Both the position numbers and the translations under genes were made by a program. Below, piece after piece: positions 14,268 to 51,700 of a DNA stretch of 64,000 bases. The notes beneath the pieces are model-generated. The model did no database searches and was not told the DNA's origin. It was given only the letters and a program-made list of their open reading frames with translations. The stretch lies in contig NIVC01002678.1 in assembly GCA_002269645.1 (NCBI GenBank), forward strand, positions 86,056 to 150,055, given 5' to 3'. How positions within the stretch are numbered: the stretch's first letter is position 1; every line of letters begins with the position of its first letter. The DNA is from Macrostomum lignano (lineage: Eukaryota).

Positions 14268-14350
<83 letters not shown>

Positions 14351-25200: not shown

Positions 25201-26332
25201 TCTGCGACAAAAAGCTCTGTTAATTGCCCATGAAGGACATCAAGGCATTTCCAAAGCCAAAGAACGACTGCGAAGTACCGTATTTTGGCCTGGTATAAGC
25301 AAAGACGTGGAGATCTTTTGCAAGAAATGCAATGTGTGCATCCACACAACGAAAAAAGGAAGTCGGATCCCAATTGTGCCAACGGAAATTCCGGATAAGC
25401 CGTGGGACAAAGTGGCAATGGACTTCAAAGGACCACTTCCGAATGGTAGCAACCTGCTAGTTTTCATCTACTACCACTCGAGATTTCCTCTAGTGTTCAT
25501 CATGAAGCGCACAGAAGCGAGCGACGTAGTGCGAATTCTAAAGAAAGTGATTTCACTATTTGGACCATTGAAAGAACTCGTCTCAGACAACGGAACAAAT
25601 TTCTGTTCGAAAGTCGTTGACGAATACCTTAACAGTCAAGGCGTCATTCACTCTCGGATAATTCCGCGTCACCCAGCAGCAAATGGGGAGGTGGAAAGAT
25701 TCAATGAAACATTGAACAAAGTCATCAGAAGATCCAGAATTTTGAATGGATCAAGTTTTGAAGAGGAATTTCAAATCTTTTTGCACGCCTATAGAACAAC
25801 ACCGATGAGAGCAACAGGCGTAGCGCCAGCAAACCTTTTCTTTCGGTGGAGCGCGCGGACAAAACTTCCTCAAATGAACGACGAGACAATAGATCCTTTG
25901 ATTAAGCAGAAAGATAAAGACGCCGACTACAAAAGAAAAATGTCCAACTACGCTAATCGGAACGCTCGTGACTGCGACATCAAAACAGGTGACACAGTAG
26001 TGATTGAAAGGGAAGCAAGGAACAAGTACGATAGTATTTTTGGTACAGAGCAATACTACGTAAGGAAGCGAGTCGGAGGACTGTTGATCCTGGAGAACAA
26101 AAGTGGCACAATCAAGAAGCGCCACGTTAATAAGGCCAGAAAGATATTCCCAGACTCAGAATCGGACGAGGATCTGGTAACGTTTTCTGGTGGAGGAGGA
26201 ATGAGCGACAGTCAGCGAGAAAAGAGGGACGCATCCGAAATACCACAGTGTGATCCAAGAACAATGCGCAGAAGTGGACTCCGACCACAGACTGTACTGA
26301 GGAGGCCAATTCGTTTCCCTACAATGAACTGA
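22277..26332 (+). pseudogene. gag-pol: Disrupted gag-pol of element 2
   Basis: 22277-24133 has CYRCNRTGHRPWDC and CKVCHKKGHIKQAC knuckles, protease LIDSGSS and RT LTVDFRNLN. The YLDD motif is broken by an indel at ~24121-24146. 24154-24969 carries the RT end and RNase H (VDAS, EREAFA, TDHKP). Further frameshifts and a TAA occur near 24967-25183. 25190-26332 is integrase (HEGHQG..C..C, MDFKGP, SDNG, NGEVERFN). Confidence 0.93.
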
Positions 26333-27191: not shown

Positions 27192-30100
27192 TTCTCAGAC
27201 CTGTGCCGTGAAGTGTCAGTCCTCACTGAGCCTCTCTTCATCTGCTCTCGTGTCTGCCCTCACTGAGCCGCTCTTCATCTGCTCTCGTGTCTGCCCTCAC
27301 TGAGCCGCTCTTCCTCTGCTCTCGTGTCTGCCTTTCTTAGCCGCTCTTCATCTGCTCTCGTGTCTGCCCTCACTGAGCCGCTCTTCATCTGCTCTCGTGT
27401 CTGCCTTTCTTAGCCGCTCTTCATCTGCTCTCGTGTCTGCCTTTCTTAGCCGCTCTTCATCTGCTCTCGTGTCTGCCTTTCTTCGCCGCTCTTCATCTGC
27501 TCTCGTGTCTGCCTTTCTTAGCCGCTCTTCATCTGCTCTCGTGTCTGCCTTCACTGAGCCGCTCTTCATCTGCTCTCGTGTCTGCCCTCACTGAGCCGCT
27601 CTTCATCTGCTCTCGTGTCTGCCCTCACTGAGCCGCTCTTCATCTGCTCTCGTGTCTGCCCTCACTGAGCCGCTCTTCCTCTGCTCTCGTGTCTGCCTTT
27701 CTTAGCCGCTCTTCATCTGCTCTCGTGTCTGCCCTCACTGAGCCTCTCTTCATCTGCTCTCGTGTCTGCCTTTCTTAGCCGCTCTTCATCTGCTCTCGTG
27801 TCTGCCCTCACTGAGCCTCTCTTCATCTGCTCTCGTGTCTGCCTTTCTTAGCCTCTCTTCATCTGCTCTCGTGTCTGCCTTTCTTAGCCGCTCTTCATCT
27901 GCTCTCGTGTCTGCCTTTCTTAGCCGCTCTTCATCTGCTCTCGTGTCTGCCCTCACTGAGCCGCTCTTCATCTGCTCTCGTGTCTGCCTTTCTTAGCCGC
28001 TCTTCATCTGCTCTCGTGTCTGCCCTCACTGAGCCGCTCTTCATCTGCTCTCGTGTCTGCCCTCACTGAGCCGCTCTTCATCTGCTCTCGTGTCTGCCTT
28101 TCTTAGCCGCTCTTCATCTGCTCTCGTGTCTGCCTTTCTTAGCCGCTCTTCATCTGCTCTCGTGTCTGCCTTTCTTAGCCGCTCTTCATCTGCTCTCGTG
28201 TCTGCCTTTCTTAGCCGCTCTTCATCTGCTCTCGTGTCTGCCTTCACTGAGCCGCTCTTCATCTGCTCTCGTGTCTGCCCTCACTGAGCCGCTCTTCATC
28301 TGCTCTCGTGTCTGCCCTCACTGAGCCGCTCTTCATCTGCTCTCGTGTCTGCCCTCACTGAGCCGCTCTTCATCTGCTCTCGTGTCTGCCCTCACTGAGC
28401 CGCTCTTCATCTGCTCTCGTATCTGCCTTTCTGTTCTCAGGCTGTGCCGTGAAGTATCATTCCTCACTGAGCCGCTCTTCATCTGCTCTCGTGTCTGCCC
28501 TCACTGAGCCGCTCTTCATCTGCTCTCGTGTCTGCCCTCACTGAGCCGCTCTTCATCTGCTCTCGTGTCTGCCCTCACTGAGCCGCTCTTCATCTGCTCT
28601 CGTGTCTGCCTTTCTTAGCCGCTCTTCATCTGCTCTCGTGTCTGCCCTCACTGAGCCGCTCTTCATCTGCTCTCGTGTCTGCCCTCACTGAGCCGCTCTT
28701 CATCTGCTCTCATGTCTGCCTTTCTTAGCCGCTCTTCATCTGCTCTCGTGTCTGCCCTCACTGAGCCTCTCTTCATCTGCTCTCGTGTCTGCCTTTCTTA
28801 GCCGCTCTTCATCTGCTCTCGTGTCTGCCCTCACTGAGCCGCTCTTCATCTGCTCTCGTGTCTGCCCTCACTGAGCCGCTCTTCATCTGCTCTCGTGTCT
28901 GCCTTTCTTAGCCGCTCTTCCTCTGCTCTCGTGTCTGCCTTTCTTAGCCGCTCTTCATCTGCTCTCGTGTCTGCCCTCACTGAGCCTCTCTTCATCTGCT
29001 CTCGTGTCTGCCTTTCTTAGCCGCTCTTCATCTGCTCTCGTGTCTGCCCTCACTGAGCCGCTCTTCATCTGCTCTCGTGTCTGCCCTCACTGAGCCGCTC
29101 TTCATCTGCTCTCGTGTCTGCCTTTCTTAGCCGCTCTTCCTCTGCTCTCGTGTCTGCCTTTCTTAGCCGCTCTTCATCTGCTCTCGTGTCTGCCCTCACT
29201 GAGCCTCTCTTCATCTGCTCTCGTGTCTGCCTTTCTTAGCCGCTCTTCATCTGCTCTCGTGTCTGCCCTCACTGAGCCTCTCTTCATCTGCTCTCGTGTC
29301 TGCCTTTCTTAGCCTCTCTTCATCTGCTCTCGTGTCTGCCTTTCTTAGCCGCTCTTCATCTGCTCTCGTGTCTGCCTTTCTTAGCCGCTCTTCATCTGCT
29401 CTCGTGTCTGCCCTCACTGAGCCGCTCTTCATCTGCTCTCGTGTCTGCCTTTCTTAGCCGCTCTTCATCTGCTCTCGTGTCTGCCCTCACTGAGCCGCTC
29501 TTCATCTGCTCTCGTGTCTGCCTTTCTTAGCCGCTCTTCATCTGCTCTCGTGTCTGCCTTTCTTAGCCGCTCTTCATCTGCTCTCGTGTCTGCCTTTCTT
29601 AACCGCTCTTCATCTGCTCTCGTGTCTGCCCTCACTGAGCCGCTCTTCCTCTGCTCTCGTGTCTGCCTTTCTTAGCCGCTCTTCATCTGCTCTCGTGTCT
29701 GCCCTCACTGAGCCGCTCTTCATCTGCTCTCGTGTCTGCCTTTCTTAGCCGCTCTTCATCTGCTCTCGTGTCTGCCCTCACTGAGCCGCTCTTCATCTGC
29801 TCTCGTATCTGCCTTTCTGTTCTCAGGCTGTGCCGTGAAGTATCATTCCTCACTGAGCCGCTCTTCATCTGCTCTCGTGTCTGCCCTCACTAAGCCGCTC
29901 TTCATCTGCTCTCGTGTCTGCCCTCACTGAGCCGCTCTTCCTCTGCTCTCGCGTCTGCCCTCACTAAGCCGCTCTTCATCTGCTCTCGTGTCTGCCCTCA
30001 CTGAGCCGCTCTTCATCTGCTCTCGTGTCTGCCCTCACTGAGCCGCTCTTCATCTGCTCTCGTATCTGCCTTTCTGTTCTCAGGCTGTGCCGTGAAGTAT

Positions 30101-33100
30101 CATTCCTCACTGAGCCGCTCTTCCTCTGCTCTCGTGTCTGCCCTCACTAAGCCGCTCTTCATCTGCTCTCGTGTCTGCCCTCACTGAGCCGCTCTTCATC
30201 TGCTCTCGTATCTGCCTTTCTGTTCTCAGGCTGTGCCGTGAAGTATCAGTCCTCACTGAGCCGCTCTTCCTCTGCTCTCGTGTCTGCCCTCACTGAGCCG
30301 CTCTTCCTCTGCTCTCGTGTCTGCCCTCACTGAGCCGCTCTTCCTCTGCTCTCGTGTCTGCCTTTCTTAGCCGCTCTTCATCTGCTCTCGTGTCTGCCCT
30401 CACTGAGCCGCTCTTCATCTGCTCTCGTGTCTGCCCTCACTGAGCCGCTCTTCATCTGCTCTCGTGTCTGCCTTTCTTAGCCGCTCTTCATCTGCTCTCG
30501 TGTCTGCCTTTCTTAGCCGCTCTTCATCTGCTCTCGTGTCTGCCTTTCTTAGCCGCTCTTCATCTGCTCTCGTGTCTGCCCTCACTGAGCCGCTCTTCAT
30601 CTGCTCTCGTGTCTGCCCTCACTGAGCCGCTCTTCATCTGCTCTCGTGTCTGCCTTTCTTAGCCGCTCTTCCTCTGCTCTCGTGTCTGCCTTTCTTAGCC
30701 GCTCTTCATCTGCTCTCGTGTCTGCCCTCACTGAGCCTCTCTTCATCTGCTCTCGTGTCTGCCTTTCTTAGCCGCTCTTCATCTGCTCTCGTGTCTGCCC
30801 TCACTGAGCCTCTCTTCATCTGCTCTCGTGTCTGCCTTTCTTAGCCTCTCTTCATCTGCTCTCGTGTCTGCCCTCACTGAGCCGCTCTTCATCTGCTCTC
30901 GTGTCTGCCCTCACTGAGCCGCTCTTCATCTGCTCTCGTGTCTGCCCTCACTGAGCCGCTCTTCATCTGCTCTCGTGTCTGCCCTCACTGAGCCGCTCTT
31001 CATCTGCTCTCGTGTCTGCCCTCACTGAGCCGCTCTTCATCTGCTCTCGTGTCTGCCTTTCTTAGCCGCTCTTCCTCTGCTCTCGTGTCTGCCTTTCTTA
31101 GCCGCTCTTCATCTGCTCTCGTGTCTGCCCTCACTGAGCCTCTCTTCATCTGCTCTCGTGTCTGCCTTTCTTAGCCGCTCTTCATCTGCTCTCGTGTCTG
31201 CCCTCACTGAGCCGCTCTTCATCTGCTCTCGTGTCTGCCCTCACTGAGCCGCTCTTCATCTGCTCTCGTGTCTGCCTTTCTTAGCCGCTCTTCCTCTGCT
31301 CTCGTGTCTGCCTTTCTTAGCCGCTCTTCATCTGCTCTCGTGTCTGCCCTCACTGAGCCTCTCTTCATCTGCTCTCGTGTCTGCCTTTCTTAGCCGCTCT
31401 TCATCTGCTCTCGTGTCTGCCCTCACTGAGCCTCTCTTCATCTGCTCTCGTGTCTGCCTTTCTTAGCCTCTCTTCATCTGCTCTCGTGTCTGCCTTTCTT
31501 AGCCGCTCTTCATCTGCTCTCGTGTCTGCCTTTCTTAGCCGCTCTTCATCTGCTCTCGTGTCTGCCCTCACTGAGCCGCTCTTCATCTGCTCTCGTGTCT
31601 GCCTTTCTTAGCCGCTCTTCATCTGCTCTCGTGTCTGCCCTCACTGAGCCGCTCTTCATCTGCTCTCGTGTCTGCCTTTCTTAGCCGCTCTTCATCTGCT
31701 CTCGTGTCTGCCTTTCTTAGCCGCTCTTCATCTGCTCTCGTGTCTGCCTTTCTTAACCGCTCTTCATCTGCTCTCGTGTCTGCCCTCACTGAGCCGCTCT
31801 TCCTCTGCTCTCGTGTCTGCCTTTCTTAGCCGCTCTTCATCTGCTCTCGTGTCTGCCCTCACTGAGCCGCTCTTCATCTGCTCTCGTGTCTGCCTTTCTT
31901 AGCCGCTCTTCATCTGCTCTCGTGTCTGCCCTCACTGAGCCGCTCTTCATCTGCTCTCGTATCTGCCTTTCTGTTCTCAGGCTGTGCCGTGAAGTATCAT
32001 TCCTCACTGAGCCGCTCTTCATCTGCTCTCGTGTCTGCCCTCACTAAGCCGCTCTTCATCTGCTCTCGTGTCTGCCCTCACTGAGCCGCTCTTCCTCTGC
32101 TCTCGCGTCTGCCCTCACTAAGCCGCTCTTCATCTGCTCTCGTGTCTGCCCTCACTGAGCCGCTCTTCATCTGCTCTCGTGTCTGCCCTCACTGAGCCGC
32201 TCTTCATCTGCTCTCGTATCTGCCTTTCTGTTCTCAGGCTGTGCCGTGAAGTATCATTCCTCACTGAGCCGCTCTTCCTCTGCTCTCGTGTCTGCCCTCA
32301 CTAAGCCGCTCTTCATCTGCTCTCGTGTCTGCCCTCACTGAGCCGCTCTTCATCTGCTCTCGTATCTGCCTTTCTGTTCTCAGGCTGTGCCGTGAAGTAT
32401 CAGTCCTCACTGAGCCGCTCTTCCTCTGCTCTCGTGTCTGCCCTCACTGAGCCGCTCTTCCTCTGCTCTCGTGTCTGCCCTCACTGAGCCGCTCTTCCTC
32501 TGCTCTCGTGTCTGCCTTTCTTAGCCGCTCTTCATCTGCTCTCGTGTCTGCCCTCACTGAGCCGCTCTTCATCTGCTCTCGTGTCTGCCCTCACTGAGCC
32601 GCTCTTCATCTGCTCTCGTGTCTGCCTTTCTTAGCCGCTCTTCATCTGCTCTCGTGTCTGCCTTTCTTAGCCGCTCTTCATCTGCTCTCGTGTCTGCCTT
32701 TCTTAGCCGCTCTTCATCTGCTCTCGTGTCTGCCCTCACTGAGCCGCTCTTCATCTGCTCTCGTGTCTGCCCTCACTGAGCCGCTCTTCATCTGCTCTCG
32801 TGTCTGCCTTTCTTAGCCGCTCTTCCTCTGCTCTCGTGTCTGCCTTTCTTAGCCGCTCTTCATCTGCTCTCGTGTCTGCCCTCACTGAGCCTCTCTTCAT
32901 CTGCTCTCGTGTCTGCCTTTCTTAGCCGCTCTTCATCTGCTCTCGTGTCTGCCCTCACTGAGCCTCTCTTCATCTGCTCTCGTGTCTGCCTTTCTTAGCC
33001 TCTCTTCATCTGCTCTCGTGTCTGCCCTCACTGAGCCGCTCTTCATCTGCTCTCGTGTCTGCCCTCACTGAGCCGCTCTTCATCTGCTCTCGTGTCTGCC

Positions 33101-33246
33101 CTCACTGAGCCGCTCTTCATCTGCTCTCGTGTCTGCCCTCACTGAGCCGCTCTTCATCTGCTCTCGTGTCTGCCCTCACTGAGCCGCTCTTCATCTGCTC
33201 TCGTGTCTGCCCTCACTGAGCCGCTCTTCATCTGCTCTCGTGCCTT
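27192..33246 (+). repeat. Satellite of 37-bp (A), 36-bp (B) and 72-bp (C) monomers with a 2154-bp higher-order duplication
   Basis: The core GCCGCTCTTCATCTGCTCTCGTGTCTGCC is followed by CTCACTGA (A) or TTTCTTA (B). C carries GTATCTGCCTTTCTGTTCTCAGGCTGTGCCGTGAAGTATCATTCCTCACTGA. Identical track ORFs are offset by 2154 bp (29247/31401, 29683/31837, 30415/32569). Confidence 0.95.
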
Positions 33247-33599: not shown

Positions 33600-34300
33600 T
33601 AGAAAATAAAAAAGAAAGAAGGGCGGGCAGAGAAGGCGGAGAGAAGAGATAAGGAGAGCAGAGGGAAAAGGGAAGTGAGAGGTGAGATGGGGAGAGAAAG
33701 GAACAGAAAAGAGAAAGGAGGGGAGAGAAGAGGGAGAAAGGAGAGCGGGAGGAGAGATGGGGAGAGAGGGGAGAAAGGAGAGAATAGAGAGAAGCAAAAA
33801 GGCGAGAAAGAAAAGATAGAAAAATTAGTGAGGAATAATATAGACGGAAAGGGGAGAGAAATAAACAAAGGAGAGAAGAGGGAAAAGAGAGTACAGAGAA
33901 AGTGGTAGAGGTGGAGAGAGAGGAGAGAAGAGAGAGAAAGAGAGGAGATATGGGGAAAGATTGGAGAAAAAATAGAAAAAAGAGAAAGAGAGGAGATATG
34001 GGGAAAGATTGGAGAAAGAAGAGAAAAGAGAGGAGAAAAGATAGGAGACAAAAAAAGATAAATAAGTGAGAGATGGTACAAAAGAAGAGGGGAGGGTGGA
34101 GAGAAAGGAGAGGAGAGAAAAGGGGAAAGAAGAGAAAGGAAAAAGGGATGAGAGTTGAGATGGGGAGAGAGGGGAGAGAGGGGAGAAAAGTTAGGATAGG
34201 AGAAATTGGAGTGGGAAGAGAATTAGGGGAGAGAGGAGGGGGAGAGGGGAGAAACCGGGAGGGAGAAGCGTGGAGAGAGGAGAGATGAGAGACAGAGGGC
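33600..34300 (+). repeat. Polypurine (GA-rich) low-complexity tract
   Basis: Almost exclusively G/A on the plus strand; it produces spurious L/S/F/P-rich minus-strand ORFs. Confidence 0.88.
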
Positions 34301-35266
34301 TGAAAAAAGACACCAACTTGAGCGGGCCGGAGTTTGCCGACCCCTGCTCCAGAGTCAAGAACTCGATCGGAACCTGTTGGTGCCACTTGCTGGTGTCAAT
34401 GATCTTGTCTGTGGCTTGTTTTCCTTCTGCCGCACTTGCACTGTGCAGAGCTATCTGTGTTGCCTGCTTCCTCTCTGCCATGTGATGTTACTGCGCCAGC
34501 ATAATATGCTTATCTTTTGAGGCATTTAAATTTTAAGACGCCTTTAAGTACAACTAATATGAGTATTACTAGCTCGTATTTCCATTTTGAGTGATTAAAT
34601 TAGTAGGATTGTACCGTATCCCTTCTCATTATTTTTAACATTTTGCAGTGTCTAAGCTGCCCTTTATCTGATGTCGTGTCTGCCTTTCCCTTCTCAGACT
34701 GTGCCGTATGGAATTCAGCTGTATTCAAATCGTAGACTATTAATTATGGATCTAAACGATTATTTGTTGAATATAGATTTTTATATTTGAATCATTCAAT
34801 AGATTCGCAGAAAATAATTTGTTTTTTTGTGACGTGTTAATTGCATAAATTTAGCACATTTAAATCATTTCTTATTCTTTATTTCGAATGAGGTCAGTTT
34901 TGTGTTGACGCGAGCGAAAGTTGAGGGCATTGCTCACCTTGCGATTGACTGAACACAGACATCTGCACAATTTCTCCCACTCCTCATCCCTCTCCTGCCC
35001 CTCCCTCTCCTTCCCATCCCTCTCTCCCATACATTTACTTCTCATTCCACTTCTTCCATCGTCTCCTTCTTTTAAAGCACCTCACGTAATCACCCACCCA
35101 CCTGTTTGAATGATTTTTGCACCTAAAATATTAGTATATTTGTGTGGACATTGCACACTTTCATATTTTCTATCAAAACCCCTCCAGAACCGACTCGAAC
35201 TGATTCAAGAAGCGTCAAAACCAATCGAATTTTACTCCCGTCTGAAGCAACTTGCTAGCTTCGAAA

Positions 35267-38200
35267 ATGCACGCCTGTCTGGCTGCAGTGATCGCAATTG
35301 CATTGCTTGGATTTCAAGTTGAAGCTGCAGAAAAAGACACCAGCAAGACTGTCGATGCCAACGCCCTGGAGCAGTACGGTCCGGCTGTAGACGCGATTGC
35401 AGACGCAATCAGCAACTCAGACAAGAAGACCAAGGACTTGCTGGATGATCTCACGCAATCAACTGACGGTCAAGCCACCCCACTAATCACCAAGGAAATT
35501 CTAAAGAACATGCTAAACGAGCGCTCGGCAAAGACGCAGAAAGCGGGCACTAGATCCATCAGTCTGCAGGCCGAGCAGGGCTTCAACGGATTCTCCAACT
35601 ATCAGCCTTCGGGTTGGGTGATGACGGAGACTGTGGGCGAGCCTGACAAGGTGACGGAAGACGCAGAAGACAAGATGCCCGTCTATGTCTATCCGATGGG
35701 AGTTGGTCCGGTGTTGATGAATGGGTGCACAGGTGCATCCTATCCCAAGACTAGCAAATGCTACTCCAGCAAGGTTCCTGGCAATGGCAATACAATCTGC
35801 ATGAAGCTCCTGGATGCTGCCGCGTACATCGGCGTCGGCTTCGACGGACGAGGATTCTACAAGATCGAGAGCCGCAAAGCCAGTCTGGTGCAACGCTACT
35901 GCTCCAACATGGCTAAATTCCTGGGCAAGGACGTACCCGACACGATGAACGTGTTTGGTATCTTCGAGACCACAGCTGAGACCAAGTCGTTCCGGTCTGC
36001 GGACGAGTACATGAGCTACATCAGGGACAAAGCCGGTCTATCAGAGCAGCGAAATTTGTTCTTGAGCGAGGCTCGCCAGCACGGCACTTCTGAGGCGTCT
36101 GGGTTCAATCTCGGTGCGATAGGTGGAATCGTCGGTGGTGCTATTGGAGCCATAGCGGGTGGGCCTGCGGGAGCGGCCTTGGGAGCGACGCTTGGTGGCG
36201 CGGTGGGTGGCTCAATTTCATCTGGATCAGGAGAAAGCTCTGGCGACTCATCATCAACCACTAGCAGCCAATCGGCCTCAAAAAATTCACAGTATTCCCA
36301 GGCTGCAAGAAAACAAGGTTCTACTGAGGATTTCTTTGCCATCATGTATGTGAGTGTAATCATGTACGAAATTTCACTGGATGATGTGAAGCCCAATGAC
36401 ATCAACTTCGCTGCGCTCAGAGACTACATGAGTCTTCCAGAGTCCTACTTTTCAGTGGGCGCTGCCAGCAAATTTCAAGACTTTCTGCTACGCTGGGGCA
36501 CGCATTTTATCCGGTCTGGAAAGTTCGGCGGTCAGCTAAAAATCACAAAGAGAGCAAAGACAAACAAGTTTGCGTCGTCGGAAGAGTTTGCCAGTCTGGC
36601 TGAGACCGAGTTCCAGTCAATGTTTTCATCGCTGCAGTCAAAGTATTCTCAGCAAACCACTCGTACAGGCTTTTTGGGTTTTGGCGGAAAGAAAACTACT
36701 ACAACGAAATCGAGCAGTGCAAAGTCGGAGAGCCAGTACAGGAGCACAAGAAATGAACGTAATCAAGAGTCGCACAGTTCTAGCGGGTCCGAGTTTACCC
36801 AGACCACCGTCGAGGCTCAGGGAGGAACTCCGGAAATCGCAGAAGCCCTCGTTGACTTTTACACTCCGGCATTCAAGCAGCTGTACCACAGGTGGATCGC
36901 CTCCATCAATGACTATGTGAAGCCGTTCGAGTTCAAGCTGAAGCCCATCGATCAGCTGTTCGACATGAACATGGACGACCTGTTTCCGGCTGGAAACCGC
37001 GACTTTGGCTGTGTTGGAAGTGCGGGGAGCAAAGTGAATATTTTGACAGAGCCCAAAACTCGTCGTCGCTACTACCTCGATGAGGAGACTTACTTTGCTA
37101 ACAATAAGACTAAAACTAAATTGGTTAAGATTTACTGCAAATACAAGAACCAACAAGACTTTCAGAACGCTCTAAAGAGACGAAGACTCTCACTGGAGAA
37201 GGCCGTAGCTGCGTACATGACGGAAGGTCCTTTCCCAACCTCCTCACACGAGTTGAAAGCAGGACAACCCGGTTGCGAGAGCTCTACACTGGCCAAGATC
37301 GACGTGTTCAACTCAAATAACAACACACTGACGTTTCTGCAGCTCAAGAAATCCCCGTTTTTAATAGCTTTCGATCTGCCTCAGGATATTCCGAACTTGT
37401 TGAAATCGCAAGCCAAGTATGTGATGACGTATCTAAAAGACAGGTGGTTTGCGACAGAGCCAGGACACCATCATGCGCACTTGTACGAAGGCTGTCAGCT
37501 CGAAGGCTTCAAGCCAGCTGAGACTAAGATCTGTATCTGGAGCATCATCCTCACCTATGAGGAGGAGACGGGCTTCTTCCATATCGATCCGCTTGACTTT
37601 ATTGCATCAAAGCGCCGCAACCCAAACCTTCCAGACTGGATAGAGGGTACCACGTTTGCTAGGGCTTCTCGGATAGAAGGGCAAAAAGGCGCAAACTCCA
37701 CTGCTGCGGCATCAATTCCGTGCAACGTTCGGTGGTTGAACTCTCACAGACTGGACCCTGATCGGGAAGAAAACTGTCTTTACTTTACGGCTGCGACTGC
37801 TGGAGACATCTTTGTTATATTCGCGTCCATACCAAGAGACCACACAACATGGTACTACCTGCAGATCAATATGGATGGAGTGACATTCTACAAAGCAATG
37901 AAACCGCAAAAGAGAGACTATCAGAAGGGAATGGGGACACTTGGTGACAAGAACCTGTACCAGTCCTACTTCTTGTGTGCGAATCAGGCCAATGGATCAA
38001 TTCTAATGCAGTTCGGTAAGGCGGGCTCGAACAGCGAGATCGGCACTGTCTACTCTGGGTACAAGTTCCGATCGGACAGTCAGTACAGCCGCCTGTCTTT
38101 CTACACATTCGGAGCGGGCTCGAAGTCTGTGTCACTGATGGACATTCACCTCACCAAGGACATGCCGCAAGTGGAGTGTTTGAACAATAACTACAAGATG

Positions 38201-39611
38201 GTTGATGGTCACTGCATCCTGGATTGTCACAAAGAGTGCATTGACTGTAATCTAGCAAAAGATGACACCAGCTGCTTCCAGTGTCGCAATGTGCGCGTTG
38301 AATTGTGGAATTCTATTGGGGGCAGAAGAGTCAGGACAGTGCAGTGCTTGCCAGAGTGTCCGGTTGGCTACCAACTGAGTGACAGCAAGGAAAACCTGTG
38401 CGTGCCCTGCCAACCAGGTACTTTCAAGAACACAACGGGAAATCATAACTGCTTGGCATGCGCTCCTGGATGTTTTTCTGCATCACAAGCGACTGTGAAT
38501 TGCATGCTCTGCAGTCCAGGAAATTTCGCTTCCAAGCCAGGATCGGTACAGTGCCAGCAGTGCCATGTTGGAACAGCGAGCAGTTTTAACGGATCAACTT
38601 CGTGCGGGGCCTGCAGTGCCGGCTTGTTCGCAGCTCAGCGAGGTCAAACGGAGTGCACACCATGTCCAGTCGGACAGTTCAATAAAGCAGAGAGACAGAC
38701 GCAGTGCCAGTTGTGCTCTGCGGGGTTCTTCGCCGACAAGCCAGGTCAGAAATCTTGCAGTGCTTGCCCTGCTGGAACATCGAGTGCTGAGGGCTCAGTG
38801 AGCTGCGCCAACAACTGCAAGAGGGGCGAGTTCAGTCCAGCCGAGGGCATCCCTTGCGCCAAGTGCCCTGCAGGCTCGTTTACTCCCAGCGCGGGATCGG
38901 TAAACTGCACTTCGTGTGCCGAAGGCAGCTATTCCAGTAGCGCTAGGTCAGCGTCTTGCATCCCGTGCCCTGCTGGGAGCTTTGCTGACCAAATATCCTC
39001 AACAAACTGTAGCCAGTGCCCTGCAGGCTCGTTCAGTCCCAGCGCGGGATCGGTAAATTGCACTTTTTGTGCCAAAGGCAGCTATTCCAGTCGCGCCGGA
39101 TCAGCTTCTTGCACCCCGTGTCCCCGGGGATTCTACCAGCCACTGGCAAACCAGACGCACTGTAAGAGCGCCATGCCAGGGTGGTACGTCGACACGGAAG
39201 ACCGTTCGGAGCAGAGAATGTGTCCGCTGGGGAAGTATTCCGGTGCTGCTGCATCAGAATGCACCGTTTGTCCTTCTGGGACCTTTGCTGACCGAGTGGG
39301 CTCAACCAACTGCAGCCAGTGCCCTGCTGGAAGCTGGAGTAACGCTGGCTCTGCATCTTGCCAGCTGTGCAAAGGAGGCTCATTCTCAGTTGGAAACGCT
39401 GCTAACTGCACTCTGTGCCCAGCAGGCACTTTCTCAAACAGCTCAGGCAGCAGCGAGTGCTCGAAATGTCCCGCTGGCACCTACGCCAGCGAATCCGGTT
39501 CCCAAAAATGCGAATATTGTAATTTGTTTTCCCTTAGTCGTCACAGCGGAATGACGCATTGTGACCAATGCCCTGACTCTGGGAGTACCTTTGGCACGGA
39601 TACATGTTACC
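35267..39611 (+). CDS. Exon 1 of a secreted MACPF-domain protein with furin-like and ephrin-receptor-like (GCC2/GCC3-type) cysteine repeats
   Basis: ATG at 35267 starts the signal-peptide-like MHACLAAVIAIALLGFQVEA. MACPF features are YIGVGFDG (35825) and the signature W-G-T-H-F-x6-G-G (WGTHFIRSGKFGG, 36494-36532), ending near KLKPIDQLF (~36960). Furin-like CHKECIDC..C..C and CLPECPVGY follow, then ~22-24 CxxCxxG(T/S)(F/Y) repeats. A canonical donor C|GTAAGT lies at 39611/39612. Confidence 0.9.
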
Positions 39612-39696
39612 GTAAGTAGGAGCGTAATTGCATTTTCAATATTCTGTTTGTTGCTTTTATATGGCCTTTATTATCAATAACTCTAAAATTCTTCAG

Positions 39697-40106
39697 CCAA
39701 TTTGCGCATGAGGTGTTGGATAAGTTTTGGCGAATGTGAAAAAACTATTGATGGCGATTTGGACACATATGGAACAGCAATTATGAGTGACCATGTACCA
39801 AAGGGCGCTGAAATATTCCGGACCTATTTCGGGTACAAACTCGACCGAGTTTCATCTGTGAAAGGGTTTCTAATCTGGCGGAACAAAAAGTCACGCATGT
39901 CATTCAAGAATCTGATGCTGAAACTACTTAATTCTGGTCGGAAAGATATTGTTGACTGTACATTTGAATACGATGTTGATGAAATCGTTACATACCACAA
40001 AACCTGCTCTAGTTCGAATATTAAATATGTGGTAATCATTCAAAGGTATTCGGATTATGAAAGACGAGAAATCAACGTTGCCGAAGTCACATTGTATGCC
40101 AATTAG
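39697..40106 (+). CDS. Predicted exon 2: C-terminal galactose-binding-like (F5/8 type C/discoidin or F-type lectin-like) domain
   Basis: An 85-bp AT-rich GT-AG intron (39612-39696) ends TTCTTCAG. The phase-1 splice joins in frame: ..TCY-P-NLRMRCW. The exon has IDGDLDT near its start and KYVVI..INVAEVTLY at its end, the pattern of galactose-binding-like beta-sandwiches. The splice is predicted, not observed. Confidence 0.75.
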
Positions 40107-42360
40107 TTGGCTGGCTGAAAAAATTACCGAAAACTATGCTCGGATAATGAAGACTTGAGTTGAAATGCAAAGTTTTTCTTTCTGGAAATACAATGTGCAT
40201 CAGATACGATGAAAAAAGTTATTCGCATGGCGAAAAATTTTAAGGACTTCGTTTTTTCGCAGAGGGTTTAGCATTGCATCCGGCCACAAGTCTTAAGTCA
40301 AGAGTTTTAAGTATTAATCAGACCGCAAGCCCCTCTCTGTCATTTCATGCTTACTTTTGAACTTTTTACTTTTTACATGTTTACTCTCATGACAGTCTGA
40401 TAATAGATAGATAAGTTTAACAGAAAACAGTTTATTCTCTAGTTTACTCGCATTCGGCGTCTCAAAATGTTTTCTTTCAGTCAAGCACGTCTCTGCAATG
40501 TGCCAACGGGAAAGGACACAGCCTCTGCCATAGCATCACTTTATTTGTAATCAAACTTGCCTTTGCCGTATCAATTATTACATCGGCAGTAAATCTACTC
40601 ATCTCTGCATTTGTTGGCGGAGAGGTAATTTGACCTACTGTAATATTTAAACAAAGCTCTTCTGCGAGTTGAAAACAGGGCAGAGGCAGAACAAATGCGG
40701 AACCTGTGTAGCGGTAGAGCTTTACTTAGGCCTGCTACTAACCCTAACACAGTATTTGGTTCATAGCTGGCACAAGTGGCCATCCAGTGTTTGTTACGAT
40801 CTGTGACTGCTACTCTGTGATTTCAGAATTTTGTCTTATGGAGGACAATCGGTGCTCCTCCGTGTGCTGGCTTAGTTAAAGTTGGATCAGACTCGGGACC
40901 AGGTCCTGAAAGAGTTGACAGGATAGGTGGTAACCAGAATGGAGCAGATGGGGATCAGGATGGGGTAGAAGGGGAACAAGGATGGGGTTGAACGGAATCT
41001 ATAGGGTAGAGGGGAAATCAATACGGGGTGGAGAGAGAATCGCGAGATGGAGTAGAAAGGAGTCGGAGTATGGTGGAAGGTAGAAGGGGTGGGTTTGGGA
41101 TAGGACAATAAGTTTCGGAACAAGTTTCGGTTAAAAGATTAAATCTGAAAAGCTGAGTGACGGCGCCACCTTCCCACAGAACTCGAATTCCTACACGCAT
41201 TGCCCTCTCACCGCAGGTGAAAGAACCGCAGATTCTGCTTTGCTCTCGCATCGCCAACTCCATCATTCGAGTCAATTCAGCCTCCGAAGTAAAGCAATAT
41301 AAGCTATTAAAGCAGCAACTGATACTTAGCAAATGACTGAGTGTTACTCAAGCCCTCGGTCTGAGAACATTTTCTCCATCTGGCAGCCGGCTTTCACTCA
41401 AAAATCAAAACTGAGATTATTCATCAAACTTGTTATTATAGCCGTTGTATTCTAACGGTATGATCGTACCAAACCATTCCCTCTTGTTCCTACACCAATT
41501 AAGGGATCCGCTTTTGACAGTTTTCTTCGCTGCACCGGAACCGGTCCGAGCAACGCAGGCAGAAAGGATTCAAGAACACGCGCTAACTGTCTGTTACGCA
41601 CCTTTCACACGCGAATCAAATTGACAGTCCTCGAGGTCAACGAGATATTCAGTGATTCTGCCAAAAGGTCGGATTTATCGTCTAAGCGCCTGCGTATTGA
41701 GTACACCAATCAACACTGCCATAGTGCAGCCTCGCCAAGCCTTCAAATTTCATCGCCTCATCAACCATGTCTATTTGCGTTATCTCCGACTACGATGGTC
41801 ATTCGTCTTCAGTCAAATGACTATACTCACTCGGTTGCGAATTTCTCTAATTTCTGATTGGTTTACGGGTGGGGGCGGGGGGTTTTATACCGACGTGGTT
41901 TGGCGGTTTGAGCCTCTCTGCCTTGGTTGAAAATTTTCAACCAAAGAAGCTGACCGCTTTCCCTCTTGCCTCATCGCGCTTCCTCGCTGTCCTCGCCAAT
42001 TTCACTGCTTGTGTGTTTGTGTTTGGTGGAGCCAGTGTGCTAAGCTTCTCGAACCTCGATATTATGCAAGCTTTGGATTCAAGGTTGAGATTCCATTCAC
42101 CAGCGTAGCTTGCGGAATGACCTGCAGAGCAGGTCATAGACTATTTCAGAATATTTTAGACACAGCCGTATCCTGCGATAGCAGGCGGATTAGCTGAAGT
42201 GGGGTGATGGCCGGGTGGGTGGGTATGAATGAAAAACAGTAAAATTGTAGAATTCATGAAATCAAGAAAGCTTAAAGCTACAAAAGTGAAGTAAAGTGCA
42301 AATTAATTAATTAAATCATCAGCAGCTTTATTAAGTGCAATAAATTCCGAGTGTCGGATA

Positions 42361-44064
42361 GTGTTTGTCATCGCTGCGGCTCAAGTGCAATTTGATCCGG
42401 ATACCGACTCCGAACATGAAGAGGAGGAAGGCTGGCTAACAGCGGATGAGGGCGAAGATGAAGAAGAGGAGGACCTGCATCTCCAGCCAAATGAAGACAC
42501 CGAATGCTTGCCAAATGATGATTGGGCGGCACGTGAAGCTGGGCAGGATCAACGGCCAGATGCAGAGCTCGAGTTCTTGGGAATGCCCGGTGTGAATCCT
42601 GACCTGCCGAGACCAGAGACTGCCAATGACGATCCAGCTGCGTTTTTCAATCTGTTTCTGACTGCTGACCTGCTGCAAGAGCTCTGCGCTTGGACCAATG
42701 CGCGGGCGTGGCGCAAATTCGACGAGCTGCAAGCATCGATGCCAAACCTGCCTCAAAGGTTCTCTGCGTGGAAAGACGTGACCGTGGACGAGATGAAGAA
42801 GTTTGTCGCCATGTCGCTTTACATGGGAATAGTTAAAAAGCCCGAGATCGCCAACTATTGGAGCAAATATGATTTCTGCGCAACACCTTTCTTCAAACAA
42901 CTCGCTTGCCTGACAAGGGACAGGCACCAACAGATCAGTAGCCAATTGCGCTTCTATGACTGCAACAACTTCGATGGAAACGACCCGCTAGCAAAGGCAA
43001 GACCATTTATTACTGTTTCTGAGGTCTGTCGCAGTGTGTACATGCCAGAAAAAAGAAATTAGTGTCGGCGAAGAGCTAGTCCTGTTCAGGGGTCGTGTCA
43101 CATTTCGTCAATATATTCCATCCAAGAAAGCGCGATATGGCATAAAACTGTATTGTCTTTGCGAAGCTAGATCCGGTTACGTTAACAACTTCTTAGTACA
43201 CTCTAGTAGAGCTGAGAATGAGCGATTCGGTCAAGGTCTCGGGTGTGGGGGGCTGTCTCTGAGTGAGAAAGTCCTGGTGGAGGCAGTTAGGTACGTATTG
43301 GATTTAGGTTATCACGTCTTCTGCGATAGCTGGTTTGGATCTTATCGGCTTGCGATGTATCTACTGCAGCGGAGCACCTTGCTGATATGCACAGTTCGCG
43401 CCGATCGCGGTGTCCCAGATGGCCTTCGTGGTATTCAGGTCCACCAAGCTCCAAGCTGCACGTTTATGCGCAAAGGAAACGTGCTAGCGTTGAAAATAGT
43501 TGACAGGAAGAGCTCCGGGCTAAAGAAAGTTTACTTCCTTGACACGCAAGGCGTAGCCCAACTTCACCCTGTTCACCAAATCGTGCAAAACGAACTGGTC
43601 ATCCAGCAGAAGCAACAGACAGTTGTATCGTACAACAAATTTATGGGTGGTGTCGACAGGCTTGACTCTGCCTTGCAGCCATACAACCCATGCCAGCGGA
43701 CTCAGAAGTGGCCCACAAAGCTCGGAGCGCACCTTTTTCTTGTACATGCCAGAAACGGCTGGGTTGTGTACCGATCATTCGGAGGTACACAGGAGTTTTT
43801 GAAGTTTTTGGATAAAGTTCATCAAGAACTTTATCAACTCCTCTGGACCAGGTCGTGTAAGAGCTGGTCGAGCACAGCAGCAGCCAGCAGTGGCTTACCA
43901 ACAGCACTCGCTAAAGCGCATTAAAGCCACCGAAGCGCAAGCCCGACCAACGAAGCGGCGCAGGCAGTGCTACAGAAACTGTCTTCTGCTGCGGCTTATG
44001 TGAAGGAAACCCTGGACTGTGCGCAGCCCCCTGTTTTGCTGACTGGCATGCCGCACAGTTGTAA
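42361..44064 (+). pseudogene. piggyBac-like (PGBD4-type, DDE_Tnp_1_7) transposase, frameshifted
   Basis: Acidic N-terminus, then FFNLFLTADLL..WTNARA, WKDVTVDEMKKF and YWSK. After a frameshift near 43040 come ISVGEELVLFRGR..RQYIPSKKARYGIK, FCDSWF and YNKFMGGVDRLD. The cysteine-rich tail TVFCCGLC..PGLC..PCF..WH is in another frame and ends TAA at 44064. No TTAA-bounded TIRs were identified. Confidence 0.92.
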
Positions 44065-45700: not shown

Positions 45701-48700
45701 TTAATTTTTATATGACACCTTTCATGTCTGACATGACGCTTCTTTTGATTTTTACATGACGCTTCTTTTATTCTTCCATGATGCTTCTTAATTTTTTAAA
45801 TGACACTTTCATTAGTTTTTATATGAGGCTTCTATGATTGTTTACATGACGCTTCTATGATTGTTTACATGACGCTTCTATGATTTGTACATGACACTTC
45901 TATGATTGTTTACATGACGCTTCTATGATTTTTTACATGACGCTTCTATGATTTGTACATGACACTTCTATGATTGTTTACATGACGCTTCTATGATTTG
46001 TACATGACACTTCTATGATTGTTTACATGACGCTTCTATGATTTTTTACATGACGCTTCTATGATTGTTTACATGACGCTTCTATGATTTTTACATGACA
46101 CTTCTATGATTGTTTACATGACGCTTCTATGATTGTTTACATGACGCTTCTCTGATATTTACATGGCGCTTCTATGATTTTTTCATGACGCTTCTATGAT
46201 TTTTTCATTACGCTTTTATGATTTTTTACGTGACGCTTCTATGATTTTTACATGACGCTTCTATAATTTTTATGACGCTTCTATGATTTTTTACATGACG
46301 CTTCTATGATTTACATGACGATTCTATGATTTTTGTATGACGCTTCTATGATTTTTACATGACGCTTCTATGATTTTTACATGACGATTCTATGATTTTT
46401 GTATGACGCTTCTATGATTTTTTACATGACGATTCTATGATTTTTACATGACGCTTCTATGATTTTTACAGGACGCTTCTATGATTTTTACACGACGCTT
46501 CTATAATTTTTATGACGCTTCTATGATTTTTTACATGACGCTTCTATGATATTTACATGACGCTTGTATAATTTTTTACATGACGCTTTTATGATTGTTT
46601 ACATGACGCTTCTATGATTTTTACACGACGCTTCTATGATTTTTACATGACGCTTCTATGATTTTTACATGACGATTCTATGATTTTTGTATGACGCTTC
46701 TATGATTTTTACATGACGCTTCTATATTTTTATGACGCTTCTATGATTTTTACATGACGCTTCTATGATTTACATGACGCTTCTGTGATTTTTTACATGA
46801 CGCTTCTATGATTTTTACATGACGCTTCTATGATTTTTACATGACGCTTCTATGAATTTTACATGACGATTCTATGATTTTTGTATGACGCTTCTATGAT
46901 TTTTACATGACGCTTCTATGATTTTTGTATGACGCTTCTATGATTTTTACATGACGCTTCTATAATTTTTATGACGCTTCTATGATTTTTTACATGACGC
47001 TTCTATGATTTACATGACGATTCTATGATTTTTACATGACGCTTCTATGATTTTTACATGACGCTTCTATGATTTTTACATGACGCTTCTATGATTTTTT
47101 ACATGACGCTTCTATGATTTTTACACGACGCTTCTATGATTTTTACATGACGCTTCTATGATTTTTACATGACGATTCTATGATTTTTGTATGACGCTTC
47201 TATGATTTTTACATGACGCTTCTATAATTTTTATGACGCTTCTATGATTTTTTACATGACGCTTCTATGATTTACATGACGCTTCTGTGATTTTTTACAT
47301 GACGCTTCTATGATTTTTACATGACGCTTCTATGATTTTTACATGACGCTTCTATGAATTTTACATGACGATTCTATGATTTTTGTATGACGCTTCTATG
47401 ATTTTTACATGACGGTTCTATGATTTTTGTATGACGCTTCTATGATTTTTACATGACGCTTCTATAATTTTTATGACGCTTCTATGATTTTTTACATGAC
47501 GCTTCTATGATTTACATGACGATTCTATGATTTTTACATGACGCTTCTATGATTTTTACAGGACGCTTCTATGATTTTTACACGACGCTTCTATGATTTT
47601 TACATGACGCTTCTATGATTTTTGTATGACGCTTCTATGATTTTTACATGACGCTTCTATGATTTTTACATGACGCTTCTATGATTTTTTACATGACGCT
47701 TCTATGATTTACATGACGCTTCTATGATTTTTGTATGACGCCTCTATGATTTTTTACATGACGCTTTTATGATTGTTTACATGACGCTTCTATGATTGTT
47801 TACTTGACGCTTCTATGATTTTTTACATTGACGCTTCTATGATTTTTTACATGACGATTCTATGATTTTTACATGACGCTTCTGTGATTTTTACAGGACA
47901 CTTCTATGATTTTTACACGACGCTTCTATGATTTTTACATGACGCTTCTATGATTTTTACATGACGATTCTATGATTTTTGTATGACGCTTCTATGATTT
48001 TTACATGACAATTCTATGATTTTTGTATGACGCTTCTATGATTTTTACATGACGCTTCTATGATTTTTACATGACGCTTCTATGATTTTTTACATGACGC
48101 TTCTATGATTTTTGTATGACGCTTCTATGATTTTTACATGACGCTTCTATGATTTTTACATGACACTTCTATGATTTTTTACATGACGCTTCTATGATGT
48201 ACATGACGCTTCTATGATTTTTACATGACGCTTCTATGATTTTTACATGACGCTTCTATGATTTTTTACATGACGCTTCTATGATTTACATGACGCTTCT
48301 ATGATTTTTTACATGACGCTTCTATGATTTTTACATGACGCTTCTATGATTGTTTACATGACGCTTCTATGATTGTTTACATGACGCTTCTATGATTTTT
48401 TCATGACGCTTTTATGATTTTTTCCATGACGCTTCTATGGTTTTTTACATGACGCTTCTATGATTGTTTACATGACGCTTCTATGATTTTTACATGACGC
48501 TTCTATGATTGTTTACATGACGCTTCTATAATTTTTTATGACGCTTCTATGATTTTTTACATGACGCTTCTATGATTTTACATGACGCTTGTATATTTTT
48601 ACATGACGCTTTATGATTTTTACATGACGCTTCTATGATTTTTACACGACGCTTCTATGATTTTTACATGACGCTTCTATGATTTTTACATGACGCTTCT

Positions 48701-51700
48701 ATGATTTTTATGACGCTTCTATGATTTTTACATGACGCTTCTATATTTTTATGACGCTTCTATGATTTTTACATGACGCTTCTATGATTTACATGACGCT
48801 TCTATGATTTTTACATGACGCTTCTATGATTTTTACATGACGCTTCTATGATTTTTACATGACGCTTCTATGATTTTTACATGACGATTCTATGATTTTT
48901 ATGACGCTTCTATGATTTTTGACATGACGCTTCTATGATTTTTACATGACGCTTCTATGATTTTTACATGACGCTTCTATGATTTTTATGACGCTTCTAT
49001 GATTTTTTACATGACGCTTCTATGATTTACATGACGCTTCTATGATTTTTACATGACGCTTCTATGATTTTTATGACGCTTCTATGATTTTTACATGACG
49101 CTTCTATGATTTTTACATGACGCTTCTATGATTTTTACATGACGCTTCTATGATTTTTACATGACGCTTCTATGATTTTTGTATGACGCTTCTATGATTT
49201 TTACATGACGCTTCTATGATTTTTACATGACGCTTCTATGATTTTTACATGACGCTTCTATGATTTTTACATGACGCTTCTATGATTTTTACATGACGCT
49301 TCTATGATTTTTATGACGCTTCTATGATTTTTACATGACGCTTCTATGATTTTTACATGACGCTTCTATGATTTTTACATGACGCTTCTATGATTTTTAC
49401 ATGACGCTTCTATGATTTTTACATGACGCTTCTATGATTTTTACATGACGCTTCTATGATTTTTTACATGACGCTTCTATGATTTACATGACGCTTCTAT
49501 GATTTTTACATGACGCTTCTATGATTTTTACATGACGCTTCTATGATTTTTACATGACGCTTCTATGATTTTTACATGACGCTTCTATGATTTTTTCATG
49601 ACGCTTCTATGATTTTTTCATGACGCTTCTATGATTTTTACATGACGCTTCTATGATTTTTACATGACGCTTCTATGATTTTTACATGACGCTTCTATGA
49701 TTTTTACATGACGCTTCTATGATTTTTACATGACGCTTCTATGATTTTTACATGACGCTTCTATGATTTTTACATGACGCTTCTATGATTTTTATGACGC
49801 TTCTATGATTTTTACATGACGCTTCTATGATTTTTACATGACGCTTCTATGATTTTTACATGACGCTTCTATGATTTTTACATGACGCTTCTATGATTTT
49901 TGTATGACGCTTCTATGATTTTTACATGACGCTTCTATGATTTTTATGACGCTTCTATGATTTTTACATGACGCTTCTATGATTTACATGACGCTTCTAT
50001 GATTTTTACATGACGCTTCTATGATTTTTACATGACGCTTCTATGATTTTTACATGACGCTTCTATGATTTTTACATGACGATTCTATGATTTTTGTATG
50101 ACGCTTCTATGATTTTTACATGACGCTTCTATGATTTTTATGACGCTTCTATGATTTTTACATGACGCTTCTATATTTTTACATGACGCTTCTATGATTT
50201 TTTACATGACGCTTCTATGATTTTTACATGACGCTTCTATGATTTTTACATGACGCTTCTATGATTTTTACATGACGCTTCTATGATTTTTACATGACGC
50301 TTCTATGATTTTTACATGACGCTTCTATGATTTTTATGACGCTTCTATGATTTTTACATGACGCTTCTATGATTTTTACATGACGCTTCTATGATTTTTA
50401 CATGACGCTTCTATGATTTTTACATGACGCTTCTATGATTTTTACATGACGCTTCTATGATTTTTACATGACGCTTCTATGATTTTTACATGACGCTTCT
50501 ATGATTTTTACATGACGCTTCTATGATTTTTACATGACGCTTCTATGATTTTTACATGACGCTTCTATGATTTTTACATGACGCTTCTATGATTTTTACA
50601 TGACGCTTCTATGATTTTTACATGACGCTTCTATGATTTTTACATGACGCTTCTATGATTTTTACATGACGCTTCTATGATTTTTACATGACGCTTCTAT
50701 GATTTTTACATGACGCTTCTATGATTTTTACATGACGCTTCTATGATTTTTACATGACGCTTCTATGATTTTTATGACGCTTCTATGATTTTTACATGAC
50801 GCTTCTATGATTTTTACATGACGCTTCTATGATTTTTACATGACGCTTCTATGATTTTTACATGACGCTTCTATGATTTTTACATGACGCTTCTATGATT
50901 TTTACATGACGCTTCTATGATTTTTACATGACGCTTCTATGATTTTTACATGACGCTTCTATGATTTTTACATGACGCTTCTATGATTTTTACATGACGC
51001 TTCTATGATTTTTACATGACGCTTCTATGATTTTTACATGACGCTTCTATGATTTTTACATGACGCTTCTATGATTTTTACATGACGCTTCTATGATTTT
51101 TACATGACGCTTCTATGATTTTTACATGACGCTTCTATGATTTTTACATGACGCTTCTATGATTTTTACATGACGCTTCTATGATTTTTACATGACGCTT
51201 CTATGATTTTTACATGACGCTTCTATGATTTTTGTATGACGCTTCTATGATTTTTACATGACGCTTCTATGATTTTTACATGACGCTTCTATGATTTTTA
51301 CATGACGCTTCTATGATTTTTACATGACGCTTCTATGATTTTTACATGACGCTTCTATGATTTTTACATGACGCTTCTATGATTTTTACATGACGCTTCT
51401 ATGATTTTTACATGACGCTTCTATGATTTTTACATGACGCTTCTATGATTTTTACATGACGCTTCTATGATTTTTACATGACGCTTCTATGATTTTTACA
51501 TGACGCTTCTATGATTTTTACATGACGCTTCTATGATTTTTACATGACGCTTCTATGATTTTTACATGACGCTTCTATGATTTTTACATGACGCTTCTAT
51601 GATTTTTACATGACGCTTCTATGATTTTTACATGACGCTTCTATGATTTTTACATGACGCTTCTATGATTTTTACATGACGCTTCTATGATTTTTACATG

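Follow-up and report, generated by a model that had tools for sequence, protein, structure and literature searches.

A predicted secreted MACPF protein with a long cysteine-rich stalk and a divergent F-type-lectin-like tip from Macrostomum lignano, a flatworm

The DNA analyzed here, referred to as the window, is a stretch of 64,000 nucleotides (nt) from the flatworm Macrostomum lignano (assembly GCA_002269645.1, contig NIVC01002678.1, positions 86,056 to 150,055, forward strand). It is rich in repeats and represents the last 64 kb of the 150,055-bp contig; the region around the gene, 34000-41500, matches this contig of assembly Mlig_3_7 over 7501 bp at 100% identity. Within it lies an intact, transcribed two-exon gene, BOX15_Mlig029702g1, which encodes a predicted secreted protein of 1584 amino acids (aa) composed of a MACPF domain, a family-specific mid-region, a cysteine-rich stalk, and a C-terminal domain that we call the tip (Table 1). 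The gene itself is not new, as it is already deposited in GenBank ("hypothetical protein") and in UniProt ("MACPF domain-containing protein").

The coding region spans two open reading frames (ORFs) in different frames, one of 1455 codons at 35252-39619, with its first ATG at 35267, and a second at 39702-40106. A sequence-only reading of the window had joined the two in frame through an 85-nt phase-1 intron, and four independent lines of support uphold the splice between 39611 and 39697: the deposited model PAA55987.1, a sister copy, a paralogous locus, and the transcript-based annotation. The first ORF ends with ...TGT TAC C/GTAAGTAG, where the donor GTAAGT begins at 39612, and the acceptor, ...TTCTTCAG, consists of a pyrimidine-rich tract followed by CAG and ends at 39696. 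Excision of this segment generates the phase-1 join ...TDTCY-P-NLRMRCW... and the 1584-aa product, with a TAG stop codon at 40104-40106; retention of the intron would introduce an in-frame TAG at 39617-39619. PAA55987.1 contains the same 85-nt intron, and PAA74317.1 (P0023), the product of a 96.8%-identical copy on another contig, has the same junction as well as a full-length C-terminal domain. Likewise, the paralogous locus L001, whose product P0001 is 95% identical to the window protein over the stretch aligned by BLASTP, is interrupted by an intron that matches in both codon position and phase (TAC C/GTAAGT...TTTCAG/GC). The L001 intron is 100 nt long and unalignable with the 85-nt intron, and the sequence downstream of it reads R-K-IRMKC. 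The fourth line is indirect: because RNA-seq data (StringTie/TACO), de novo transcripts placed by BLAT, and TransDecoder underlie the GenBank annotation of Mlig_3_7 (PMC5730564), the junction is transcript-derived. No canonical AATAAA poly(A) signal was seen by eye in the ~650 nt past the stop codon.

PAA55987.1 differs from the 1584-aa model in exon 2 only. It can be rebuilt exactly from the window using the exons 35267-39611, 39697-39936, 39949-39965, and 39991-40035, which leaves two micro-gaps of 12 nt (39937-39948, GT..TA) and 25 nt (39966-39990, GA..TA). These gaps shift the frame, so that the protein ends at 40035 and the last domain is cut short. Both are too short and too non-canonical to be plausible spliceosomal introns, and they are probably an artifact of a paralogous transcript mapped at the minimum identity of 0.8 (minId 0.8) used for BLAT (PMC5730564). 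Since the gaps are implausible, the ORF is intact to 40106, and the sister copy has the full domain, the 1584-aa model is the better one. PAA55987.1 therefore mis-annotates the C terminus of the protein, and a correction is due.

The gene is under purifying selection, with a ratio of non-synonymous to synonymous divergence (dN/dS) of 0.21 overall against its 97%-identical copy (L003) and of 0.11 in the mid-region. In the tip, one synonymous and three non-synonymous differences are too few to be informative. We also observed that synonymous divergence (dS) from this copy is about ten times lower in the tip exon (0.012) than upstream (0.12-0.15), a pattern that gene conversion at the 3' end could explain.

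Table 1. Features of BOX15_Mlig029702g1 and its product in the window
Feature	Amino acids	Nucleotides	Strand	Basis
Coding region, two exons, BOX15_Mlig029702g1 (PAA55987.1)	1584 aa	35267-39611 + 39697-40106	+	ORF and splice reading, GenBank model
Intron, GT-AG, phase 1, 85 nt		39612-39696	+	Junction common to PAA55987.1 and PAA74317.1
Signal peptide (MHACLAAVIAIALLGFQVEA/AEKD)	1-20	35267-35326	+	Most hydrophobic 19-mer of the protein, Kyte-Doolittle 2.07
Poorly conserved N-terminal region	21-129	35327-35653	+	Column identity to family 0.15-0.29
MACPF domain	~130-570	35654-36976	+	Pfam PF01823 and family profile against PDB
Gly/Ala-rich "glycine-zipper" segment	279-315	36101-36211	+	Kyte-Doolittle 1.56; weak Pfam match to Gly-zipper_YMGG, E 0.06
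MACPF signature W-G-T-H-F-x6-G-G (WGTHFIRSGKFGG)	410-422	36494-36532	+	Read from sequence
Family-specific conserved region (~400 aa)	571-965	36977-38161	+	42 invariant columns in 12 sequences from four phyla
ConA-like/galectin-like beta-sandwich (last ~150 aa of the conserved region; moderate support)	~815-965	37709-38161	+	AlphaFold2 model
Cysteine-rich stalk, ephrin-receptor-like/TNFR-like repeats	966-1446	38162-39604	+	Pfam PF07699, E 1e-46, 13 stretches
Tip, divergent galactose-binding-domain-like superfamily (F-type lectin/F5/8 type C fold), exon 2	~1449-1584	39697-40103	+	Profile and fold evidence

The protein begins with a hydrophobic leader, called as a signal peptide from hydrophobicity and inspection rather than by a signal-peptide predictor, and similar N-terminal leaders are seen by inspection in the paralogues P0002-P0004. 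A Kyte-Doolittle scan revealed no segment of transmembrane-grade hydrophobicity in the C-terminal ~1200 aa. The leader and the lack of such a segment together predict a secreted protein with no membrane anchor. It contains no furin-type site (R-x-[KR]-R).

The MACPF domain is supported by both Pfam and family-profile comparisons. PF01823 matches aa 336-566 (nt 36272-36964) with 55.2 bits, well above its cutoff of 21.5 bits (E 1.4e-14). When compared with PDB, the MACPF profile of the family retrieves complement C6 (2e-6), C8-alpha (4e-5), and perforin-1 (1.3e-4), followed by C7, the bacterial MACPF protein GNIP1Aa, and C9; no MPEG1 structure in PDB was matched at E<=1. The N-terminal 1045 aa alone gave only a marginal phmmer match in PDB, to GNIP1Aa (E 0.18), and phmmer of the tip alone found nothing there; family profiles were therefore needed. 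The MACPF signature and a second GG motif downstream of it (VEAQGG, aa 515-520) are invariant in alignment A6, including G287, H289, G297, and G298 of the signature. The segments presumed to correspond to the two transmembrane hairpin regions (TMH1, aa ~260-355; TMH2, aa ~437-517) are of suitable length and rich in Gly, Ser, and Thr. A GxxxG-rich glycine zipper (GFNLGAIGGIVGGAIGAIAGGPAGAALGATLGGAVGG) lies within the presumed first membrane-inserting region, and its position would place it at the expected TMH1. The zipper is kept in the M. lignano paralogues P0003-P0005, absent in P0002, and shorter in the amphioxus, Lingula, and Owenia relatives.

The mid-region that follows gives no match in Pfam, and its profile finds no counterpart in PDB, MPEG1 included. 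It carries the motif block of the family, PCN[VI][KR]W-N-H ... FTAA-GD-FV-F. In an AlphaFold2 (AF2) model of this region, with a predicted local distance difference test score (pLDDT) of 67, the last ~150 aa form a beta-sandwich for which Foldseek returned galectins, SPRY, laminin-G (LG), and CBM66 domains at TM-scores of 0.4-0.6, giving moderate support for a ConA-like fold. Having no sequence counterpart in Pfam or PDB, the mid-region would define a new domain family.

The stalk contains 23 CxxC motifs and 57 cysteines within aa 966-1450. An internal tandem duplication at 38862-39139, with a 153-nt (51-aa) unit present in 1.8 copies at 82% identity, shows a recent expansion of the stalk repeats. 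The sequence-only reading had described a secreted protein of 1584 aa without a C-terminal anchor, in which a signal peptide, a MACPF domain, an uncharacterized region, furin-like repeats, ~22-24 CxxC repeats, and a galactose-binding-like domain followed one another. Its length, secretion, repeat number, and domain order all hold, apart from the furin-like repeats: Pfam calls no furin-like domain at aa ~970-1040, and the label is descriptive only.

For the tip, evidence of homology came from profiles and from the predicted fold. A profile built from four tips of the family retrieved from PDB the fucolectin-related protein 2j22 (E 3.9e-4), followed by F5/8 type C (F5/8C), galactose oxidase, and CBM32 chains. 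The same profile matched 481 proteins at E<=1e-3 in a library of 1.84 billion proteins. When the ten top matches were scanned with Pfam, seven proved to be outside the family, all with tandem PF22633/PF00754 domains ("NedA-like galactose-binding" and F5/8 type C). A hidden Markov model made from these outside domains alone recognized the window tip with 17.2 bits (E 2e-7, Z=1, single test). In addition, an HHalign comparison of three tips only (window, P0001, and P0063) with F5_F8_type_C_2 domains yielded a probability of 96.7% (E 4e-10, 115 columns), versus 0.5% for the reversed control. The AF2 model of the tip has a pLDDT of 84 and a predicted TM-score (pTM) of 0.80, from a mixed alignment that included F-type domains and so biases the model toward that fold. 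Foldseek ranks lectinolysin's lectin domain (4gwj/3lek, E 5e-6, TM-score 0.64) first among its matches, followed by, at TM-scores of ~0.65 in PDB, the fucose-binding modules of Streptococcus pneumoniae (SpX), the N-domain of galactose oxidase, and CBM32s. When the tip was used by itself in a word-indexed search for homologues, no match was found, and the paralogous tips of P0002 and P0004 gave only sub-threshold matches in Pfam. The conserved His of the His/Arg/Arg fucose-binding triad is matched in the alignment by a His of the tip (SDH, aa ~1481). We regard the assignment of the tip to a divergent F-type-lectin/discoidin fold as sound.

The N-terminal 971 aa retrieved a family of relatives that comprises paralogues in M. 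lignano (57-95% identity), proteins of Branchiostoma spp. (32-36%), of Lingula anatina, and of Owenia fusiformis, and two environmental contigs, each colinear over the MACPF domain and mid-region. For the M. lignano, Branchiostoma, Lingula, and Owenia proteins, E values run from 0 to 1e-70 and query coverage from 63 to 100%. Over this core, identity is 32-38% among flatworm, amphioxus, brachiopod, and annelid sequences and 32-68% when the M. lignano paralogues are included (alignments A2 and A6). The relatives include BOX15_Mlig017717g9, Mlig022132g2, Mlig021963g3, and Mlig023775g1 of M. lignano, LOC118430059, LOC144875283, and LOC144869188 of Branchiostoma, LOC106160199 of Lingula anatina, and an unnamed product of Owenia fusiformis. 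M. lignano has at least eight models and Branchiostoma at least ten, reflecting lineage expansion. The range of the family as given here is that of the retrieved M. lignano, Branchiostoma, Lingula, and Owenia sequences; only two proteins came back from a word-indexed search that used the mid-region alignment, and they did not widen the taxonomic range.

Most relatives share an ephrin-receptor-like stalk, which varies in length and is almost lacking in Owenia, and a C-terminal binding domain that has been swapped from one member to another. The divergent F-type-like tip is present in the window protein, P0001, P0002, and P0004. Its place is taken by Lectin_C with EGF in P0008, Lectin_C in P0009, F5/8C in P0016, SRCR in P0012 and P0019, and Kringle in P0005, with P0003 being Kringle-like by sequence inspection. 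The amphioxus protein P0011 ends in CUB and a canonical F-type lectin whose H...RVDCCSER motif is complete. Several of these domain types occur in innate-immune recognition proteins. M. lignano also has stalk-plus-tip proteins that lack a MACPF domain (P0056, P0069, and P0175), which implies that stalk and tip are a separable recognition module. An N-terminal hydrophobic leader is likewise present in P0069 and P0175, and some of these three proteins keep a CC pair that is lost in the window tip. Upstream of the window, NIVC01002678.1 holds three fragmentary family models (PAA55986.1, PAA55985.1, and BOX15_Mlig012635g1; 98% identical), suggesting a second family copy nearby.

The names of family members stop at "uncharacterized" or "MACPF domain-containing". 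A literature search combining MACPF with Ephrin_rec_like, discoidin, amphioxus, and Macrostomum, as well as the Mlig gene identifiers, found no description of the family, although such a paper may still exist. Judged by sequence, the gene belongs to an unnamed and apparently undescribed bilaterian MACPF subfamily with a core of MACPF domain and mid-region, a stalk, and an interchangeable C-terminal domain. The sequence-only reading had not recognized the architecture among C6-C9, perforin, MPEG1, astrotactin, torso-like, or apextrin. Domain content does set it apart from C6-C9, perforin-1, MPEG1, and apextrin; the architecture is not confined to this gene, as it recurs in uncharacterized models of M. 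lignano, Branchiostoma, Lingula, and Owenia.

Elsewhere in the window lie repeats and mobile elements. Positions 1-16600 form a tandem array of about five copies of a ~3.3-kb unit (82-96% identical), whose CT-rich low-complexity pseudo-ORFs (e.g., 10406-11569 and 13782-14981) have no match in Pfam. Two Ty3/gypsy-type long terminal repeat (LTR) retrotransposons follow at 17329-21299 (-) and 22277-26332 (+); one copy has an intact 1071-aa ORF for protease, reverse transcriptase (RT), RNaseH, and integrase together with a DUF7041 gag-like ORF, and in the other, pol is broken into three ORFs. A 37-bp minisatellite of strongly skewed composition covers 27213-33242 (~165 copies, 88% match). Downstream of the gene, a piggyBac-like transposase (DDE_Tnp_1_7) at 42361-43924 (+) is split by a frameshift into two overlapping ORFs, and a 22-bp satellite (ACATGACGCTTCTATGATTTTT; ~833 copies, 96% match) extends from 45731 to 64000, the end of the contig.

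The most likely reading of its sequence is that the window protein acts as a secreted, recognition-coupled, pore-forming effector of defense or attack, and we give this reading even chances. The C-terminal tip would dock the protein on a foreign cell by binding a ligand, probably a glycan, on its surface; the stalk would space or orient the protein; and the MACPF core would oligomerize, insert two hairpin clusters, and perforate the target membrane. Lectinolysin and apple-snail perivitellin-2 (PV2) would be its functional analogues. The sequence-only reading had proposed a lectin-tipped, glycan-targeted immune effector or toxin. Its observations are confirmed, the galactose-binding-like fold of exon 2 among them (HHalign, AF2, and the Foldseek match to lectinolysin), and its interpretation is partly supported: "lectin-tipped" stands as a statement of fold, whereas the F5/8C and F-type models of Pfam miss the tip and both Arg residues of the fucose triad are replaced. 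"Lectin" is therefore used here as a label for the fold and not for the function, and glycan binding by the tip is putative.

Several points weigh against a glycan-guided pore-former. PF22633 and PF00754 of Pfam do not match the isolated window tip even at E<=10, and the tip model carries the bias of its alignment. The motif NRxDCCxxR reads RNKKSRM-S in the window tip, with the loss of both Arg residues, the Asp, and the disulfide-forming CC pair; with these residues gone, the tip may bind something other than a sugar. Gly, Ser, and Thr are unusually frequent in the presumed TMH regions, a composition atypical of such segments. A rod of ~480 aa between the tip and the MACPF domain is geometrically awkward if both are to touch one membrane. 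Furthermore, the literature search returned no functional, expression, or localization data for any member, and many metazoan MACPF proteins are non-lytic (PMC5483515).

The last point leads to a different reading, in which the protein is a non-lytic extracellular MACPF protein like astrotactins, BRINPs, and Torso-like, acting in adhesion, matrix, or signaling, with the stalk and tip as extracellular matrix or cell-adhesion modules. Many conserved MACPF proteins of animals form no pores (PMC5483515). The pairing of cysteine-rich repeats with discoidin, CUB, or Kringle domains is also a typical feature of matrix and adhesion proteins, and the low-complexity TMH1 and TMH2 segments are not clearly amphipathic. 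However, the protein retains both the MACPF signature and the second GG, which do not vary across phyla, it has no membrane anchor, and lineage-specific expansion with swapped recognition-type tips fits defense families better than housekeeping or developmental genes. We consider a non-lytic role unlikely, if worth keeping in view.

A less probable alternative, which we hold in low regard, retains the pore-forming effector but not the tip as a sensor of target glycans. The tip would instead bind membrane lipid, like the C domains of factors V and VIII or the C2 domain of perforin, or it would anchor the protein to the mucus or glycocalyx of the worm itself with the MACPF domain facing outward. 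The F5/8C domains of coagulation factors bind phospholipid, and the loss of the canonical sugar-binding Arg residues agrees with a lipid-binding or self-anchoring tip. Self-anchoring would also explain the long reach of a ~480-aa stalk that hinders the tip and the MACPF domain from meeting on one membrane. On the other hand, the closest relatives of the tip in structure and sequence are carbohydrate-binding modules, and P0011 of amphioxus keeps the complete F-type motif. Weakest of all, and very improbable, is the view that PAA55987.1, although deposited for exactly this locus, is right and that the product is a truncated 1548-aa protein ending in ...NSVVDCTFHTTKPALVRILNMW without a complete tip: it needs the two micro-gaps to be real introns despite their non-canonical ends, in a genomic ORF that is intact to 40106 and has a 97%-identical copy annotated with the full domain, and the BLAT threshold permits a paralogue transcript to be placed here.

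If the family does form pores, it would show that perforin-like effectors were diversified in bilaterians through the exchange of recognition domains around an unchanging core, and this would bear on how invertebrates achieve specificity without antibodies. One may go further and picture an undescribed, ancient set of modular immune effectors shared by protostomes and deuterostomes, in which a MACPF and a ConA-like domain are joined through a rigid cysteine rod to swappable pattern-recognition tips, as germline "recognition-addressed perforins" with separate expansions in the flatworm and amphioxus lineages. This wider picture is tentative, and we would not put it at even chances. As M. lignano can be made transgenic and is tractable to RNA interference, the idea is testable.

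Comparing the window protein with known systems, its closest solved MACPF domains by profile are those of C6-C9 and perforin-1, which are likewise secreted. However, the 400-aa mid-region and the 480-aa stalk are both absent from C6-C9 and perforin-1. Conversely, no Pfam match at E<=1 to TSP1, LDLa, EGF, CCP, or FIMAC was found in the window protein, so that the MACPF domain is not flanked by TSP1, LDLa, and similar domains as in C6-C9. Perforin-1 too carries a C-terminal beta-sandwich (C2), by which it docks to its target, although Pfam matches neither C2 nor EGF in the window protein, and the MACPF-EGF-C2 architecture of perforin-1 is lacking. MPEG1 and apextrin are also MACPF immune proteins that have expanded in invertebrates. 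Membership in MPEG1/perforin-2 was considered because 13 MPEG1 genes have been reported in M. lignano (PMC10781884); the window protein has no P2 domain, transmembrane helix, or cytoplasmic tail, and gives no profile match. An apextrin/ApeC assignment was rejected as well, since Pfam finds no ApeC domain and the C-terminal domain is F-type/discoidin-like instead.

Parallels in design come from lectin-guided pore-formers. Lectinolysin of Streptococcus mitis (3lek, 4gwj), a cholesterol-dependent cytolysin (CDC), combines a MACPF/CDC pore-former and an F-type-lectin-fold domain in one chain, as does the window protein, and its lectin domain, the best structural match of the window tip, targets this bacterial toxin to glycans. 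However, lectinolysin is bacterial and belongs to the CDC rather than the MACPF sequence family. Its lectin domain is N-terminal and adjoins the pore module, with the fucose/Lewis-antigen site intact, whereas the window tip is C-terminal, lies far from the pore module, and has lost both Arg residues. In apple-snail PV2 (PcPV2/PmPV2), a MACPF chain is disulfide-linked to a tachylectin chain, making a lectin plus pore-former toxin in which an animal MACPF is delivered by a lectin module (PMC3667788; bioRxiv 10.1101/2019.12.23.880021). PV2 consists of two chains, uses a tachylectin beta-propeller in contrast to the F-type/discoidin sandwich of the window tip, and has no stalk, and no sequence relationship to the window protein was seen outside the MACPF domain. 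Should the family form pores, it would stand as a single-chain animal equivalent of such lectin-guided pore-formers as lectinolysin and PV2.

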